A DNA stretch of 64,000 nt from Rebecca billardiae RCC1528 (Eukaryota; Protista; Haptophyta): positions 3,468,675-3,532,674 of the forward strand of contig OZ251226.1 in NCBI GenBank assembly GCA_965240325.2. Reading direction: 5' to 3'. The translations under genes were made by a program, and so were the position numbers. The notes beneath the pieces are model-generated. The model had not been told where the DNA came from. It ran no database searches and saw nothing but the letters and a program-made list of their open reading frames with translations. Shown here piece after piece: positions 46,941 to 64,000 of this stretch. Position 1 is the first letter of the stretch; every line of letters starts with the position of its first letter.

Positions 46941-48028
46941 TCAGCTCGACACGTCCTTGACGGCGCCGTGCACGCTCGCCTCGTACGGCATGATCACGTG
47001 CCGCTTCGCCGCGCGCAGCGCCACGTGCAGGAACGCGTCGAGGTAGCGCATGCCGATGAGGTACTGCGTCGGCTCGACGCCGAAGAGCACGAGCGTCGAG
47101 GCCACCGCGTCGACGCTCTTCGCCTCGGCGTCCGCGAGCACCTCCTTGGACTTGGCCTGCCCCTCCGCCTGCAGCCGCATCACGCCCGCCTCGCCGTTCG
47201 AGATGGCGATCGCCGCCTGCGACTCGCCCTCCGCCTCGGTGCGCACCTGCTCGCGGTAGCCCTCCGCCGTCACGATCGACGCGCGCCGCACGCGCTCCGC
47301 CGCCAGCTGCTTGTGCATCGCCTCCTGGATGGAGCGCGTCGGGTAGATCTCGAGCACCTCGACCTGCGAGATGCGCATCCCCCAGTCGAGGCACACCTTG
47401 GCGATCTTCTGGTGCATCTGCGCGTTGATCTCCTCGCGCGACGCGAGCGTGTCGTCCAGGCCCATGTCGCCCACGATCGAGCGCAGCGACGTCTGCACGA
47501 GCTTCTCCACCGCGGTGGGCAGGTCGAACGTCTGGTACGCGACCTTGGCCGGGTCGACCAGCTGGTACAGCAGCATCGGGTGCACGATCAGCTCGACGTT
47601 GTCGCGCGTGATGATGCTCTGGTTTGGGAAGTCGAACACCTGCGCGCGCGGGGGGGCGCCGCGCGCGCGCGCGCCCGTCGGCCCGCGCGCGCCGCGCGCC
47701 GCGCGCCGCGCGCGCTGCGCCGCACCTGCTCGCGCAGGTCGATGCGCGTGATGCGCGCGGGGAAGATGGAGACGTGCTGGACGTGCTGCGCGTCGGTGTA
47801 CGTCTCCGTCATCCGCCACATCACGCTGCGCGGGTAGTCCATCAGCGGCATGAGGAAGTGCAGCCCCTCGTACAGCACGGTGTGGTACTTGCCCAGCCGC
47901 TCGATCACCATCGCCGTGCCCTTCTGCACGACGACGACCTTGCGCAGCAGGTCGACCAGCAGGGCGACGACGACGAGCCCGACCAGGCCGATCAGGATCC
48001 AGCCGATCACCTCGCCCGCGGTCGTCAT
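46941..48028 (-). CDS. SPFH/band 7 (stomatin-like) membrane protein; predicted intron 47640-47725
   Basis: N-terminal transmembrane helix; VIERLGKY..L..GLHFL.P; IDLREQ|VFDFPNQSIITRDN; QTSLRSIVG...LDDTLASRE; AER.RRA..AEG. Confidence 0.92.
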
Positions 48029-48280
48029 CTCGCGCCCCCTCGCGCGTGCGTCGGGGCCCTGCTCGGGGGGGGGGCGGTCGGTCCAGCCGCCGGCCGCCAC
48101 GGCTTGCGGAGAGTTGCGACCAGGCCGGCCCGAGCCGGACGAAATGATGGCGCCCGGCGGCGCCATCATTTGCTGGATGCTTTTCATTTTCTGACGACGA
48201 CGCGCGATGATTTCCTTCTGATACATTAGCTCCCGCGCCTCCGCCGACAGGGACGTCGAGCGCGCCGGGCGGCGGCGGCG

Positions 48281-49381
48281 CTACTGGTGCACGCAGCCCG
48301 GGCGCTGCGCGTCGGCGGGCGTCGGCTCGTCGGCGGGCGCGGGCGCGCCCTCCGCCGCCTCGGCCGCGTCCGCGCGCGCGCGCTCCATCCGCTCGTCGAG
48401 GAAGGCCCAGACCGAGTCGAAGATCACGTAGCACACCGACGCGTGGTCCGTCGTGCCCGCGCGCACGCACGCGCAGCCGCAGCCGAGCTCGGGCGCGCCG
48501 GGCGGCGCGCGGTCGTCCTCCATCGGCTCGTCGAGCTCGCCCGAGCCCGCGCGCCAGTGCCGCCCGCGCTCCTTGAGCAGCGCGCACCGGCGCGCGTCGA
48601 GGCGCGCGGCCGCCATCGTGTGGATCGAGTCGCAGAACGCGAGCGCGCACACGCGGCCCAGCTGCGCGTCGGGCGTGCACTCGGGCGCGAGGCAGCCGAG
48701 CAGCCAGGAGCCCGCGGCGGAGTGCGCGACGACGGCGACGCGGCGCGCGGGCGACGCGCCCGCCACCATCGCCCGCCACGCGTGCGCGCAGTGCGCCGCG
48801 CCCTTGGGCCCGTTGTCGTACGGCTCTCCCGAGGGGCCCTTGCGGTTCGGGTCGAAGCACACGACCGCCCAGCCGCGCGAGACGGCGGCGCGGATGTACC
48901 GCACGGCCGAGCCGTGCTCGATGCAGTCGGCCACGCACAGCTGCCGCCCCCAGATCGCCGCGCGCACCGAGCCCGAGCCGGGCATCAGCACGAGCAGCGC
49001 GCGGCCGTTGGTGCGCAGGTCGGCCGAGCCGAGCACGCGCACGCGCACGCCGCGCGCGCGGCCGCTCGGCGGCGGCGGCGGGAGCGGGCCGCCGCCGGCG
49101 CCGCCGGAGGCGCGGCGCGCGCGCGCAAAGCTCGCCTCGCCGCCCGCCTCGGGCTGCGCCGGCAGCTCGTGCCACACGAGGCCGAGGCCCGGCTCGGCGA
49201 GCAGCCGCCGGTGGATCTCGTCCATCGCCGCCTCGGCGGCCGCGCCGTAGTCGCCGCCCATGAAGATGCGCCAGTTGTGCGCGGTGAGCAGCGCGCCCGT
49301 GGGCAGGTGGAACAGCCGCGTCAGCCCCTCCGCCGTCTGCCTGAACTCGTACCCCAGCGCGGCGAGCGAGCCGGGCGGCAT
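48281..49381 (-). CDS. FAM172/Arb2-domain alpha/beta-hydrolase-fold protein (start uncertain)
   Basis: LAALGYEF; LLVLMPGSGSVRAAIWGRQLC...GS; VVAHSAAG; ALAFCDS; AGTTDH. The frame stays open upstream but has no earlier in-frame ATG. Confidence 0.8.
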   Translation of the reverse strand: MPPGSLAALGYEFRQTAEGLTRLFHLPTGALLTAHNWRIFMGGDYGAAAEAAMDEIHRRLLAEPGLGLVWHELPAQPEAGGEASFARARRASGGAGGGPLPPPPPSGRARGVRVRVLGSADLRTNGRALLVLMPGSGSVRAAIWGRQLCVADCIEHGSAVRYIRAAVSRGWAVVCFDPNRKGPSGEPYDNGPKGAAHCAHAWRAMVAGASPARRVAVVAHSAAGSWLLGCLAPECTPDAQLGRVCALAFCDSIHTMAAARLDARRCALLKERGRHWRAGSGELDEPMEDDRAPPGAPELGCGCACVRAGTTDHASVCYVIFDSVWAFLDERMERARADAAEAAEGAPAPADEPTPADAQRPGCVHQ

Positions 49382-49655
49382 GTCGCCGCGCGGCGCGCCG
49401 CGCGCGCGCCGCAGCCGCGCCGAGTCGTCGGGCAGCTCGTCCGAGATCCACGGCAGGCGGAGGAACGGCGCGCTGTCCGCCGCCGCGGCGGCGCCATCCG
49501 CCGCCGCGGCGGGCAGCTCGCCCGAGATCCACACGCTTGCGCCGACGACGCCGGCCCCGCCGAGGGCGACGACCGAGGGCTCCCCGCCGCGGCCGGACTT
49601 GCCCCGCAGCGGCGCAGCCGGATGCCGAATCTGCCGGGACGGCGGGAGCCGCGCG

Positions 49656-50840
49656 ATGGCGGCGCTCGTCGCGCTCGTGCTCGGTAGGGCAGGCGCGTGC
49701 CCGGCGCTGCCCGAGGCGGCGCGCGCGGGCGCGGACGGCCGGCCGCCGCCCGCCGCGTCGCTCGCCGCGCCGCTCGTCGCCGCGGGCCTGCTGCCGCGCG
49801 CGTGGCCGCCGCCGCCGCCGAGCGCGGCGCGCGCGCTGCGCGCCGAGCGGCTGGGCAACTACTCGATCACGTTCGTCTCGTACGCGGACGGCGAGCCGTT
49901 CGAGAGCACGCGCGCGCGCCTCGCGCGCAGCGCGCGCGACGTGGGCGGCGCCGACCGCGTGGTCTCGCACACGCGCGCGAGCGTGCTCCGCAGCGCGTGG
50001 GGCGCGCGCGTGCTGCCGCCGCTGTTTGCGCGCTACCCGGGCAGCGCGCGGTACGTGTGGAAGCCGTACGTCATCCTGCGCGCGCTGCGCGCCGCGCGCG
50101 ACGGCGACTTTGTGGTGTACGCCGACTCGTCGCGCCACTTCCCCAACCTCACGTTCGAGCGCTCGCTCACGCCGCTGTGCAACTGGCTCGGCGCCAACGC
50201 GGCGGGCGCGCTCGCGCCCGACGCGCCCACGCTCGGCGTGCTGCCGGGCGTGCGCGTCAAGCAGCGCAACGCCGCGTCGCTGCGGTACTGCGACGTGTGC
50301 GCGATCGCGCGCGCGGGCGGCGCGTGCGCCGGGCCCGGCGGCGGCGCGTGCTGCGAGTCGCTGTGGCGCGCGCCGCACTACCAGGCGACGTGGTCGGTGT
50401 GGCAGCGCTCTGCGCTCTCGCTCGCGTTCGTGCGCGCGTGGCTCTGCCTGTGCGAGGACGCGGACGTGATCGCGCGCTCGCCGTACGGGGACCAGGTGCC
50501 GCTCTCGATCGTGGCGAGCGCGTACTCGCGCGCGTACGGCCTCGCGCTGCCGTGGCTCTACTTCCCGAACGAGCGGCGCGTCTCGCCCGGGCACCGCGCC
50601 AAGGACCACAACGCGCTGCTGGCCGCGCTCACGCCCGCGCGCGCCGCGCCGCCGCCCTTCTTGCGCGACGTCGACGAGTACCCCGAGTGCGCGCGCGCGG
50701 CGGCGCGCGACCCGGCGCTCGCGGGCGACTGGCGGCTGCAGCGCTACTGCTGCACGCCCAAGCCGCTGCCGGCGAGCAAGCGCCGGCCGTGCGCCGCGCC
50801 CGCCGCGCCTGTCGAGGCCCGCGGCGGCGGAAGGCAGTAG
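49656..50840 (+). CDS. Putative secreted glycosyltransferase-like protein
   Basis: Signal peptide; YVWKPYVILRAL....DGDFVVYADS and later DQ..LS motifs, as seen in GT-A-like uncharacterised proteins. Confidence 0.6.
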   Translation: MAALVALVLGRAGACPALPEAARAGADGRPPPAASLAAPLVAAGLLPRAWPPPPPSAARALRAERLGNYSITFVSYADGEPFESTRARLARSARDVGGADRVVSHTRASVLRSAWGARVLPPLFARYPGSARYVWKPYVILRALRAARDGDFVVYADSSRHFPNLTFERSLTPLCNWLGANAAGALAPDAPTLGVLPGVRVKQRNAASLRYCDVCAIARAGGACAGPGGGACCESLWRAPHYQATWSVWQRSALSLAFVRAWLCLCEDADVIARSPYGDQVPLSIVASAYSRAYGLALPWLYFPNERRVSPGHRAKDHNALLAALTPARAAPPPFLRDVDEYPECARAAARDPALAGDWRLQRYCCTPKPLPASKRRPCAAPAAPVEARGGGRQ

Positions 50841-58200: not shown

Positions 58201-59526
58201 TGCGTGCGCGCCGGACAGCACGACGTCCGCCTTGAGCCCTTGAGTCTTGACCCCGCGAACGCCGAGGCGGAACGAGGGCCGCCATGCTTGCCGAGGGCTG
58301 TGGGGGCGTGGGTCGCCGGGCGGTGCTTTTTTCCCTCGCGCCTCCCGCCGATTCCGTCGCTTGTTCGCGAATCAGCATGGCAGCCCGAGTTCTCCGCGGG
58401 GTGGGTCTCGCTTTGCAGACAACGGCGGGAGGTGCCGGCGGGTCAGCAACGCGCGCACGCGCGTATGCGTGCTCCTCGTCCGCTACGCGCGCGTGCGCGC
58501 TCACTGCCTCGGCGCAGGCGTAGCTGCGCGCAGCGTGGCGGCTCGCGACCGCCGGGCGTCGCGGCTCGGGCCGCAGCGGCCTGGCAGGCGAGGCTCGCGC
58601 CGACGAGCAGCAGCCTGCGCACTGCGGTTTCGCGCGGGGTGCGTGCTGCGCGCTTGGACTGTCCTCTTGCCCGCGACTGCACGCACGCTCTGCGACGCGC
58701 ATGCCGCTGCGCGGCGTGGCGGCTCTCCGAGCGACGCGGCGCTCGGCGCCGCCGAGCCGCACTCGCGCGCCGCCACAGCCTCCGTCTCGGCGCCGCTCGC
58801 AGGCGGGCGCCTGCCGGCAGGCGCTGCGCGAGCGTCTACCGTCTCCGTCCCTTCCCCCTCTCTCGCGCCGGTCGCGCCCTCGGCCGGGCCGAAGCGACTG
58901 CCGCGTCGCTGCGCCGCCTCGGCGCGCCCCGCGGCGGCGAGGGCGGCGGCCCTGCGGCCAGCCGGTCGAGCGCTGGCACCGCGAGCCCGGCGCGCGGCGG
59001 CACGGGCGCGTGGCGCCGCCCCCGCCTGCGCGGCCGCACCCGAGCACGGCTACGCGCAGCGCGCGCGCCCGACGAGGACGAGCCGCGCCGGGCCTCCGCG
59101 CGCCGTGCACCGCCGGTTGGCCCGAGCGCGCGCGCCTCGGCGGCGCCGCCCTCGCGCGCGCCCGCGCCGCACGCCGCGCTCGCGGCTGGCTGCCGGGCGC
59201 CCGCGCGCCCGCGGCCGCGGCCGCGGGCCGCCGGCGCCGATGGTGGCGAGGTCGTCGGCCTCGCACGGGCTCGCGCCGGCGAGCGGCGCGCATGGCGAGG
59301 GCGGCATGGGCGCGCCCTCGCCGCCGCTGCCCGGCCGGCCGCCTCGCGCGCGGCTGCGCTGTCGCGGGAGGCGGCGATGGCTTTCGCGAGGCCACGCCGC
59401 CATCGCCCATCGCCGCCCAGCCAAATTCAGTTATTCATGCCGGCGCCGGCGGAGCCGGCCGTACATTTTTGTGGGCAGGCCCCTTATAACGGGGGTGGAC
59501 TCCATTTTTAACTTTGCGACGGCGCG

Positions 59527-59625
59527 AAAAGGGAAAGAGAGAGGGAGGAAGAGGGAGGAAGAAGGGGGAGAAGAGGGAGGGAAAAAGAGGGAGAAAGGAA
59601 AGAGAGAGGGAGGAATTGGAGGATG
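59527..59625 (+). repeat. Polypurine (A/G) low-complexity tract
   Basis: aaaagggaaagagagagggaggaagagggagg... with almost no pyrimidines. Confidence 0.85.
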
Positions 59626-60556
59626 TGAATATGCGGTTATCACTCTCACGCGGGCCGCACCGGCGGTCGGCGGAGGTGTCACTCACCGTCAGCCCACGCC
59701 ACAACGGTACTTACCGCGCGCCTCACCGCAGTCACCGCTGCTTACCACTGCTACGCCAGCACAGTCCCTGCGGCCTGCCTGATTAGTGATTGCGCGCGCG
59801 CCCACGCCCACGCGGCACACGGCCACGCACCCGGCCACACCTGCCACACGCACTGTCAGCAGTGTGAGTGGGGCGGTGCGCGCGGCCAGGCACACGCGCC
59901 GGCCACGGCCGCAACCTCGCGCGACGGCCACTGCTGTGGCGCCACTGCTGCGGCGCCGCACGCGGGTGCTGCTCCGCGCGCGCGGCTCTCTCCCCCTCCG
60001 CCGCGATGATACACACCGCGCGCAGCACGCGTCGCTGCGCCCGTGCGCCGTGGGCACACATAATCCAGGTTGAGCGTCGCCGAGGTGTTGGCGAGGAGCG
60101 CCGCCGCCAGCGCAGTCATCGGCTGTAACACTCGACCCACCGCCACCAGCCGCATCGCTTGGACTGGCACCGTCATGGCGACAGACGGCGTGAGGGGGCG
60201 ATGCAGGCGGGTTGCTGTAAGCGACAGCGTCCCGGCCGCGCTCCGCTCACGCAGTGCCATCCGCTGCGCCATGGCGTGCCCCCCTAGTTTTGCCAGAATC
60301 TGTAGTTTCCGAGAAGCGCAGCCGTCCGCGAGCGCTGGTTGGCCGGCGGCACACGTCTGATCCCCCTTAGACAATACTCATCTTGGGCTGTATCAGTGGG
60401 CACCAACACCAGCTGATACAGCCCGGCTGTGTATCAATGCCACCTGATACAGCCCAGCTGTGTATCAATGCCGGCTGATACAGGGCCCTGAGCCGACAGG
60501 CTGCACAGCCCCAGCCGCCGCGGCACCGTGTCCATACGTCAGCGCGCCGCCCGCCG

Positions 60557-61012
60557 CCCGGACTACCGCCTAATCCGGACTACAGGCCACCTGTATCACT
60601 GTATCACTGTATTCGCCTGTATCACTGACGATACGGGGGGCTCCCGTCCCGGCCACGCCGCCGCGCAGCACGCGCCGGCAGCCGCCCGCCCGGACTGCCG
60701 CCACCCGGACTACAGGCCACCCGTATCACTGTATCACTGTATCTGCCTGTATCACTGATACGGGGGGGCTCCTCCCGGCCCGGCGCCGCCGCGCCGCGCC
60801 GCCGTCCACCCGGACTGCCGCCACCCGGACTACAGGCCACCTGTATCACTGTATCACTGTATCTGCCTGTATCACTGATACGGGGAGGCCTCCTCCCGGC
60901 CGCGCCGCCGCGCCGCGCCGCCGTCCACCCGGACTGCCGCCACCCGGACTACAGGCCACCTGTATCACTGTATCACTGTATTTGCCTGTATCACTGATAC
61001 AGGGGGGCTCCT
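60557..61012 (+). repeat. Subtelomeric ~120-bp tandem repeat, 4 forward units
   Basis: Core ccggactacaggccacctgtatcactgtatcactgtatctgcctgtatcactgatacgggg; unit starts at about 60557, 60689, 60809 and 60928. Confidence 0.92.
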
Positions 61013-61208
61013 CGGCCGGCTGACGACCGTCGGGCCGCGCAGCGTCGCCCACTGGGCGCGCCGTCCGCCCGCCGCGCCGGATGCCCGGACTGCCGCCGCC
61101 ACCCGCCCCCTGGCTTGGCACCGGATTTCAGAGTCCGGGCGACGGAATTGTCCGCGCCTGAGTCCGGGGCCGGCGGCGGGCGTGCGGAGCCGGCGCGGTG
61201 GCCGGGAC

Positions 61209-61629
61209 GGGAGCCCCCCGCCGTATCAGTGATACAGGCAGATACAGTGATACAGTGATACAGGTGGCCTGTAGTCCGGGTGGCGGCAGTCCGGGTGGAC
61301 GGCGGCGCGGCGCGGCGGCGCGGCCGGCGGAGGAGCCCGCCCCCGTATCAGTGATACAGGCAGATACAGTGATACAGTGATACAGGTGGCCTGTAGTCCG
61401 GGTGGCGGCAGTCCGGGTGGACGGCGGCGCGGCGCGGCGGCGCGGCCGGGAGGAGCCCCCCCCGTATCAGTGATACAGGCAGATACAGTGATACAGTGAT
61501 ACAGGTGGCCTGTAGAGTGTAGTCCGGGTGGCGGCAGTCCGGGTGGACGGCGGCGCGGCGCGGCGGCGCGGCCGGGAGGAGCCCCCCCGAATCAGTGATA
61601 CAGGCAGATACAGTGATACAGTGATACAG
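61209..61629 (-). repeat. Same subtelomeric repeat, 4 inverted units (last one partial)
   Basis: ccccgtatcagtgatacaggcagatacagtgatacagtgatacaggtggcctgtagtccgg is the reverse complement of the core. Confidence 0.92.
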
Positions 61630-62265
61630 CGGCAGCGGGTTTCAAAACGGCCGGCGATTCGCGGCCGGGCCCGACGACCCCCACTCTCGCGCGATGGCAA
61701 GGCGCGCGTCTTCGCAGCTCGTGTGGGCGTGAGTGCCGGGCCGCGTCAGGGCGCGCTGGAGCCGTGGCGTGATGGAGACGTGGCGCCCGTGCGCTGTTCT
61801 GCGAGCCGCACCGCGACAGCCAGGCATCGCTGCAGTTGTCGCCACGCACGCTCGCGGCGGCCGCTGACGGCACGTCGCAGCCGCCGCCGGCTGCCGCGCC
61901 AATGACTGACTGGCACGCGCCCTGCGGGCCGAGCGCGCAGGCGAGAGCCGGCACCGTGCCTGCTGGCCGCCGCCGTGTCTGATCACCGCCCGTGCCCTCG
62001 CCGGCAGCGCGCGTGCGGCGCTGCGTATGCTGCGGCGCACAACGGCTCGCCAGCCAGCTCGGCCGTCAGGGCCTCGTGCCGTGTCGCCCCCCGCCCCGCC
62101 CCCCCCGTCTTGCTCACCGTTGACTGATCATCCGCGGCACGCAGGCGAGCCAACTTTACAACCGTCGGGGCCGGGAACTCCCTGTTCAGGCCGCCGCAAT
62201 CGTCCCTGTCCGCGCCCGGACTGCTCAACTCTGCTGCCGCCGGCACTCGCCGGCACACGCCCAGA

Positions 62266-62579
62266 CTCCAGACTGCCACCACCCGGACTACCAGGCCACC
62301 TGCTGTATCACTGTATCACTGTATCTGCCTGTATCACTGATACGGGGGGCCTCCTTGCCAGCTGCCGCGCCGCGCGCGCCACCGTCCGCTCCCGGACTGC
62401 CGCCATCCGGACCACAGGCCAGGCCCGTGTATCACTGTATCACTGTATCTGCCTGTATCACTGATACGGGGGGCCTCCTTGCCTGACCTTGCCAAGCCGC
62501 CACCGCGCGCGCCGCCGTCCGCTCCCGGACTACCGCCATCCGGACTAAAGCAGGCCTCCTGTATCACTGTATCACTGTA
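62266..62579 (+). repeat. Same subtelomeric repeat, 3 more diverged forward units; the last is truncated by the telomere
   Basis: The core recurs at about 62300, 62428 and 62559; the last reads ctgtatcactgtatcactg and then tagggttaggg. Confidence 0.9.
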
Positions 62580-62885
62580 GGGTTAGGGTTAGGGTTAGGG
62601 TTAGGGTTAGGGTTAGGGGTTAGGGGTTAGGGGTTAGGGTTAGGTTAGGGTTAGGGGTTAGGGTTAGGGTTTAGGGGTTAGGGTTAGGGTTAGGGTTAGG
62701 GTTAGGGTTAGGGTTAGGGTTAGGGTTAGGGTTAGGGTTAGGGTTAGGGTTAGGGGTTAGGGGTTAGGGTTAGGGGTTAGGGTTAGGGTTAGGGTTAGGG
62801 TTAGGGTTAGGGTTAGGGTTAGGGTTAGGGATAGGGTTAGGGATTAGGGTTAGGGTTAGGGTTAGGGATTAGGGTTAGGTTAGGG

Positions 62886-63695: not shown

Positions 63696-63990
63696 GGTTA
63701 GGGTTAGGGTTTAGGGGTTAGGGGTTAGGGTAGGTTAGGGTTAGGTTAGGTTAGGGTTAGGGTTAGGGTTAGGGTTAGGGTTAGGGTTAGGGGTTAGGGT
63801 TAGGGTTAGGGTTAGGGTTAGGGTTAGGGTTAGGGTTAGGGTTAGGGTTAGGGTTAGGGGTTAGGGTTAGGGTTAGGGTTAGGGGTTAGGGTTAGGGGTT
63901 AGGGTTAGGGTTAGGGTTAGGGGTTAGGGTAGGGTTAGGGTTAGGGTTAGGGTTAGGGTTAGGGTTAGGGTTAGGGTTAGGGTTAGGGTT
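62578..63990 (+). repeat. Telomere, (TTAGGG)n
   Basis: About 1.4 kb of TTAGGG with sporadic TTAGGGG/TTTAGGG variants; the G-rich strand runs 5'->3' toward the end of the window. Confidence 0.99.
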
Positions 63991-64000
63991 GGGTGGACCG

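Follow-up and report, generated by a model that had tools for sequence, protein, structure and literature searches.

A palindrome of tandem units next to a telomere

The window analysed here is a stretch of 64 kb that ends at the right end of contig C8 (3,532,674 bp), in a genome of 41 contigs and 72 Mb with a GC content of about 75%. Near this end lies a palindrome whose left arm (60543-61013, + strand) consists of about four units of ~120 bp (3.8 copies of a 119-bp unit according to TRF) and whose right arm (61200-61629, - strand) consists of about four inverted units (3.5 copies of a 122-bp unit). Between the arms is a spacer of 186 bp (61014-61199), made up in part of degenerate unit halves in both orientations; the first-pass annotation had put its length at about 195 bp. 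The best inverted pair detected by a repeat search of the window measures 176 nt at 98% identity (60830-61005 and 61340-61515), and many further inverted pairs in the arms are 80-100% identical. Clusters of octamers mark the four units of the left arm on the + strand (60592, 60730, 60842 and 60961) and the four units of the right arm on the - strand (61241, 61363, 61482 and 61607). The opposition of four forward and four inverted ~120-bp units, already described in the first-pass annotation, is real by TRF, by the inverted-repeat search and by the octamer clusters, and the symmetrical match of the outer ends (ctgtatcac and gtgatacag) was likewise observed, with CTGTATCAC... on the left and ...GTGATACAG on the right. 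The region 60575-61640, as single-stranded DNA, was predicted to form a hairpin that is nearly complete, at -633 kcal/mol.

Each ~120-bp unit is composed of the cluster CTGTATCA CTGTATCA CTGTATCTGC CTGTATCA-C-TGATAC and a GC-rich half. The cluster contains three direct motifs of the TGTATC type, two of them full TGTATCA heptamers, followed by a fourth TGTATCA and an inverted TGATAC, so that the unit carries the perfect mini-palindrome GTATCA-C-TGATAC. In the 2.3 kb of the element described below, the heptamer TGTATCA/TGATACA is present 38 times; the remaining 60 kb of the window contain it 3 times, which makes an enrichment of about 300-fold.

To the right of the palindrome, a unique non-coding segment (61630-62234, +; about 650 bp in the family) contains neither ORFs with Pfam matches nor an Rfam match, and is followed by the start of a 124-bp satellite array (62235-62579, +) of about 2.6 units, which is cut in the third unit. 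The sequence then passes directly into a telomere, (TTAGGG)n, whose G-rich strand extends for about 1.4 kb towards the contig end (62580-63994, +; 232 copies of a 6-bp unit according to TRF). On the other side, ordinary genes are found nearby, such as a long SPFH/Band-7 ORF (46941-50609, -; E value 1e-23) about 12 kb from the telomere; Pfam gave no match for the ORFs that separate this frame from the element.

Borders, terminal repeats and target-site duplications

Homology between the window and other loci of the genome begins exactly at position 60273, and this border is common to seven copies whose left flanks are unrelated. The right border was located in the four long copies at one common base about 350 bp past the array, again with unrelated flanks. 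The element ends are 28-bp terminal inverted repeats (TIRs), GGCGTGCCCCCCGAGTTTTGCCAGAATC versus the complement of ...GATTCTGGCAAAACTCGGGGGGCGCACC, and the inversion holds, except at positions 3-6, in the copies on C1, C14, C16, C18, C5 and C17. In the window, the left TIR occupies 60273-60300 (+; 28 bp, GGCGTGCCCCCCTAGTTTTGCCAGAATC) and has one mismatch to the family. A genome-wide search with the 22-nt TIR core, allowing up to three mismatches, gave 16 matches, against none in the control. Inward of the left TIR, at a distance of 117-210 bp, a subterminal region (60389-60489, +) contains three TGTATCA...TGATACA inverted pairs in repeats of ~31 bp, and the motif orientation + - + - + - was found in every copy.

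Perfect target-site duplications (TSDs) of 8 bp flank three of the four full-length copies (GCGCGACA on C1, AGACGTCA on C18 and CAGAAGGG on C14). In the C5 copy only 6 of the 8 bases match, and no TSD was detected at the flanks of the C16 and C17 copies. Both TIRs of the C16 copy are intact and its flanks differ (GTTTTCAC versus ACACTGTG), which may be due to an exchange between two copies or to a deletion in the flank. The 8 bp of host DNA beside the left end in the window (60265-60272, +; TGCGCCAT) would be one half of a TSD, the partner having been lost with the right end. The first-pass annotation was correct in stating that no TSD is visible at the window copy, because the right end of the element is missing.

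Inverted termini, a TSD of fixed length and dispersed copies with identical borders, as in a cut-and-paste TIR transposon, are thus all present. Neither the Pfam analysis of ORFs in the element and the 4 kb upstream nor the Rfam analysis of 59500-62700 gave a match, and the lack of such matches in a TIR-bounded element led us to classify the family as a non-autonomous TIR transposon family. The palindrome is the inner part of this protein-less DNA transposon with short TIRs. An inversion had been favoured over an insertion in the first-pass annotation; instead, the palindrome came ready-made with the insertion of a transposon whose left border lies at 60273.

Copies of the family in the genome

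A genome search with the left arm detected the same units on C1, C14, C16, C18 and C10 and elsewhere on C8. All the matching loci outside the window lie inside contigs, some of them with arrays of several kb, and altogether the family is present at about ten places in the genome. The search for longer copies that had been proposed in the first-pass annotation was successful: four full-length, TIR-bounded copies (4-7.8 kb) were found far inside C1 (5.9 kb), C14 (4.05 kb), C16 (5.8 kb) and C18 (7.8 kb, including an unrelated nested element of 1.95 kb). Additionally, paired ends were found in a miniature copy on C5 (453 bp) and in a diverged copy on C17 (C17:1,151,859-1,152,666; 808 bp). Solo left ends are those of the window, of a copy truncated after ~490 bp at C1:3.31 Mb and of a variant at C1:3.273 Mb, and a solo right end belongs to a diverged copy on C10.

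The layout of an intact copy is as follows: TIR, inverted motif pairs (~100 bp), a block of units in + orientation, spacer, a block in - orientation, the unique segment of ~650 bp, an array of 2-4 kb, about 350 bp of further sequence, and TIR. In a map of motif orientations this appears as a + block, a spacer of ~230 bp, a - block, a gap of ~680 bp and a long + array. The order + / - / + is the same in all copies, with the third block of the window reduced to 2.6 units and followed by the telomere. The number of units varies among copies, the + block measuring 155-410 bp and the - block 34-610 bp. In the C1 copy, the spacer and the inner units have been lost and the arms lie about 40 bp apart; this loss is a central deletion of the palindrome, which is the expected fate of long palindromes.

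Several smaller observations were made at these loci. The nested element of the C18 copy (C18:1,923,734-1,925,686) is non-coding, separates the 31-bp repeats from the left arm, and has inverted ends of 13-14 bp (TAGGTGGGTCCCT...) with an apparent 7-bp duplication, CGACAGG; as it is missing from the otherwise identical window copy, its insertion is very recent. An 875-bp fragment of the element on C8 (C8:2,864,978-2,865,852), 665 kb from the telomere and 98.5% identical to the window copy, lacks TIRs and runs from the last part of the - block through the unique segment into the array, of which it includes 1.6 units; its two breakpoints both fall within octamer clusters, which are in mirror orientation, and a clear TSD was not seen. 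A 94-bp piece (C8:2,061,432-2,061,525), 100% identical to the junction of the - block and the unique segment in the C1 copy, stands alone about 1.6 kb from an old degenerate copy at C8:2.063 Mb. At C3:4,187,143-4,187,197, a TIR-like stretch with 87% identity to the inner portion of the right end may mark the terminus of a related and possibly autonomous family. The truncated copy at C1:3.31 Mb adjoins an exon of the CDC20/Fizzy type with WD40 repeats (C1:3,305,005-3,305,622; E value 7e-85). A 37-kb element delimited by the TIR matches at C1:3,273,155 and C1:3,310,130 was considered and rejected, both on account of the CDC20-type WD40 host gene in between and because its two ends are those of separate truncated copies.

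The heptamer as a putative transposase-binding site

The diverged C17 copy retains the TIRs and the layout of the family, and at all its motif sites, in the subterminal pairs as well as in its single unit, it has TGCATCA/TGATGCA, with no TGTATCA at all. According to the aligned positions, both halves of each subterminal inverted pair have changed together. Since the diverged subfamily has TGCATCA at every site, the TGTATCA heptamer is probably a subterminal transposase-binding site, a reading also favoured by its ~300-fold enrichment in the element, and a concerted change of this kind, as read from the alignment, is the pattern expected of a binding site that co-evolves with its protein. The C17 copy also abuts a long (TA)n tract.

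Subterminal motifs bound by a transposase are known as hexamers in Ac/Ds and as 12-mers in En/Spm. Because of the parallels with Ac/Ds, En/Spm and Galileo, we read the unit blocks of the present family as amplified modules of putative binding sites; the tandem repeats of Galileo, as cited in PMC4079207, carry extra transposase-binding (THAP) sites, and Tetris is a further published analogue. The palindrome may not be needed for movement, because the 453-bp C5 copy lacks any units, which may perhaps have been deleted after insertion.

Search for a transposase and relation to known superfamilies

When the genome was scanned with Pfam for domains of the hAT, MULE, Merlin/IS1595, P-like and KDZ types, no transposase gene that could be linked to the family was found beside a TIR or octamer match. 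The hAT dimerisation domain (PF05699) gave one match at C17:765 kb, which is interrupted by a stop and distant from every TIR match; the MULE domain (PF10551) gave two (C23:328,244-328,534 and C10), both unlinked to TIRs or octamers; and the P-like RNaseH domain gave one (C21:1,533,970-1,534,365), in an open frame of 1322 aa at C21:1.534 Mb, on a contig with neither a TIR nor an octamer match. There were no genome matches to Merlin, and none to KDZ in a scan run without a positive control.

In hAT elements the TIR usually begins with YARNG and the TSD is 8 bp long; TSDs are usually 9-11 bp in Mutator and 7-8 bp in the P superfamily. The 8-bp TSD of the family is compatible with hAT and P and lies at the low edge of the Mutator range, and the TIR starts with GGCGTG, off the usual hAT consensus. 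Our literature search for the TIR sequence found no paper, and the exact 21-mer made of the TIR and its flank had no match in metagenome contigs. Matches of a triple-octamer 22-mer to six viral contigs were discarded, since only a short microsatellite-like motif is common to them, at 36-51% GC, and no other homology was found.

The telomere junction

The 60 nt leading up to the junction match, without a difference, the third array unit in C18 as well as array units in the C1 and C16 copies. Past position 62579, the copies on C18, C1 and C16 continue with TCTGCC..., whereas the window continues with GGGTTAGGG.... The telomere is joined after ...CACTGTA, the final TA of which fits the TTAGGG register, giving an overlap of 2 nt. 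We consider the distal part of the window copy to be missing from the assembly, because every right TIR is paired with another copy, except for the diverged one on C10. The telomere tract contains many single-base variants (TTAGGGG, TTTAGGG and TTAGG), and 12 non-telomeric bases (63989-64000, TTGGGTGGACCG) close the contig after it; these look like long-read errors or adapter remnants.

De novo telomere addition is known to heal chromosomes in yeast, ciliates and human terminal deletions (PMC8012806). As in those systems, the telomere is joined directly to non-telomeric sequence, here with the 2-nt overlap, and the distal sequence is absent from the assembly; in contrast to them, this is one natural junction inside a transposon copy, read from sequence. 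Judging from this single junction, the simplest reading would be a break in the array, the loss of the distal part including the right TIR, and then the direct addition of TTAGGG to ...CTGTA by telomerase.

The element may have brought about its own truncation, if its inverted blocks, or octamer clusters cut by a transposase as pseudo-ends, formed a fragile site like that of double Ds, the chromosome-breaking transposon configuration of maize. The junction lies inside an octamer cluster, as do both breakpoints of the 875-bp fragment at C8:2.865 Mb, the - block and the + array form inverted repeats separated by 650 bp, and the centre of the palindrome has been deleted in the C1 copy. Moreover, inverted repeats are described as triggers of breaks and gross rearrangements (PMC10164571). 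Set against this, only three breakpoints are involved and octamer clusters make up ~37% of the unit, so that the coincidence has a chance probability of about 5%; four copies are stable inside chromosomes; and the family has yielded no transposase. We therefore regard self-inflicted breakage as unlikely, if worth keeping in mind. The same low likelihood is given to its boldest form, an algal counterpart of a chromosome breaker, in which the + - + blocks would form cruciform-prone or pseudo-end structures. Their cutting would have led to the terminal deletion and the new telomere, to the loss of the palindrome centre on C1 and to the 875-bp fragment, inserted anew at a distance of 665 kb.

Age and inheritance of the palindrome

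A tree was constructed with all the ~120-bp units from five long copies, and the units were found to group by their position in the element and not by copy. The window, C1 and C18 share an identical outermost left unit (WIN_L1 = C1_L1 = C18_L1); the innermost left unit groups the window with C18, C16 and C14 (WIN_L4 ~ C18_L3 ~ C16_L2); and the innermost right unit groups the window with C18 and C16 (WIN_R1 = C18_R1). The middle units of both arms form one near-identical set that is distinct from the array units, and the identity between array units and arm units is about 84%. Conservation of the spacer amounts to 94-98% in C18 and C16, and to 84% in C14. Even in the degenerate old copy at C8:2.06 Mb, with an identity of ~80%, two inverted blocks are still present. 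As the units group by position across copies, the palindrome predates the dispersal of the copies and has been inherited through transposition. The shared arrangement in transposed copies means that the palindrome was neither made at the C8 telomere nor produced by the assembly.

Two alternative origins are answered by the same comparison. The first-pass annotation had suggested a scar of breakage and foldback repair, that is, a palindrome made in place by a break with foldback priming and repair (breakage-fusion-bridge) or by local inversion of a tandem array. Palindromes beside healed ends are a classic product of hairpin-capped breaks, and the mini-palindrome GTATCA-C-TGATAC of the unit could prime template switching. 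This origin is nevertheless very improbable for the window, as the same arms, spacer and position-matched units recur in the C1, C14, C16 and C18 copies, and in the ~80% identical old copy: the order + / spacer / - was found in four TIR-bounded copies, three of them with 8-bp TSDs. A foldback event of this kind may well have made the palindrome once, in the ancestor of the family. Still less probable is an assembly artefact, in which a chimeric or foldback long read close to the end of the contig would have created a false inverted duplication. Such artefacts do arise easily where an end has been assembled from a handful of noisy long reads, and the telomere tract does contain single-base variants typical of read errors, yet four independent internal loci share the inverted arrangement and the conserved spacer, and the arms are inexact (80-98% identity) with differing inner units, unlike those of a read foldback.

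The unique segment of the window copy is identical to that of the C18 copy at 650 of 650 positions and 98.9% identical to that of the C1 copy, and over 61200-62579 the window and the C18 copy are colinear with 96.5% identity. Because the sister copy is identical in the unique segment, the putative healing event of the window can be dated as very recent.

Distribution relative to chromosome ends

The 14-mer consisting of a double octamer, TGTATCACTGTATC, has 269 matches in the genome, where about 0.01 would be expected by chance from base composition. All 269 fall in eight loci (C1:1.98 Mb, C18:1.92 Mb, C14:2.54 Mb, C16:0.34 Mb, C8:2.06 Mb, C8:2.86 Mb, C10:1.69 Mb and the window), of which a single one, that of the window, lies at a contig end; the other loci of the family are 64 kb to ~2 Mb from contig ends. 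With all 16 TIR matches and all 269 14-mer matches mapped, the element was found on none of the other chromosome ends of the assembly, so that a single terminal locus stands where a telomere-associated family would occupy several. The first-pass annotation had proposed an undescribed telomere-associated element able to extrude cruciforms, and had named the arrangement at other chromosome ends as a check on a conserved system. Its description as a mobile, repeat-built and undescribed element stands; the association with telomeres has to be abandoned, as the other loci are internal and the arrangement is absent from all further chromosome ends of this assembly. A conserved subtelomeric element belonging to the chromosome-end architecture, as the distance of 950 bp to a true telomere and the octamer repeats directly abutting TTAGGG might suggest, has hardly any probability left, being terminal at only one of the eight satellite loci and one of the 16 TIR matches and having internal copies with TIRs and TSDs and without telomere repeats.

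A telomere-associated sequence of the Leishmania type, which the octamer beside TTAGGG had suggested, was dropped in view of a host genome of 72 Mb at ~75% GC, and a literature search combining the octamer and telomeres returned nothing relevant. Base composition and the size of the genome likewise spoke against a human or other vertebrate source of the TTAGGG contig.

Comparison with known elements

Among published designs, those of Tetris and the foldback elements come closest. Tetris of Drosophila virilis is a protein-less, low-copy element with inverted blocks of 120-220-bp tandem repeats, which also form satellite-like arrays of kilobase size; its TSD is 8-10 bp and no autonomous partner has been found (PMC4079207). 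The present family resembles these elements in being protein-less, in its inverted repeat blocks and satellite arrays, in the size of its TSD and in the lack of a detected partner. It differs from them in its termini, which are repeat-built arms in Tetris and foldback elements and 28-bp TIRs here, and in the position of the palindrome, which begins 270 bp inside the left TIR, is confined to the element's left part and is followed by a third, forward array. The host also differs, being an alga-like protist here and an insect in the case of Tetris. The arms occupy about positions 270-1360 of the element, with the right terminus 3-6.5 kb further on; because the repeat arms are internal and the termini are short TIRs, we place the family outside the foldback class.

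Galileo, a member of the P superfamily from Drosophila buzzatii with a TSD of 7-8 bp, is similar in that internal tandem repeats contain extra copies of a transposase-binding motif (as cited in PMC4079207); its TIRs are very long and its THAP-domain transposase is known, whereas the sole P-like ORF of the present genome, on C21, is unlinked to the family. The likeness to hAT elements consists in the 8-bp TSD, and that to Ac/Ds and En/Spm in short motifs in both orientations within the subterminal few hundred bp. Double Ds offers a further parallel, an inverted internal structure tied to a broken and healed chromosome. Unlike in Ac/Ds, the motif modules are here amplified to kilobases, and the break lies inside the array and not at the element end.

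Finally, MITEs and other non-autonomous elements with tandem repeats have been described as seeds of satellites (PMC9659126), as have Helentron derivatives in oyster (PMC7492417). The present family likewise is a non-autonomous element dispersing a satellite-type array; the known examples are mostly shorter than 1 kb or rolling-circle elements, whereas here TIRs and TSDs bound elements of 4-7.8 kb with a 1-kb palindrome.

Significance

Taken together, the palindrome is very probably a module of a young, low-copy, non-autonomous TIR family, the window copy of which would have been broken in its array and healed by a telomere. The ancestor of the present copies already had the palindrome, and transposition carried it to each site; after dispersal, unit numbers drifted and one copy lost the palindrome centre. 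The window copy and the C18 copy are very recent sisters, the former of which would have been broken within the long array, and the inverted arrangement of putative binding-site blocks may make the element fragile.

The window thus holds no new telomere system; what it reveals is a young DNA-transposon family in a little-studied, extremely GC-rich, alga-like genome, a new family of an already known kind of element. A palindrome of 1 kb has survived several rounds of transposition, a transposon has distributed a satellite array over the genome, and a putative binding motif has been altered in step at every site of a sister subfamily. The window copy would be a clean natural case in which telomere addition within a transposon has healed the end of a chromosome. 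The family is a useful marker for strain comparisons and for the hunt for its transposase, and, if the chromosome-breaker reading were true, this very recently active family would link transposon architecture to the turnover of chromosome ends in the lineage.
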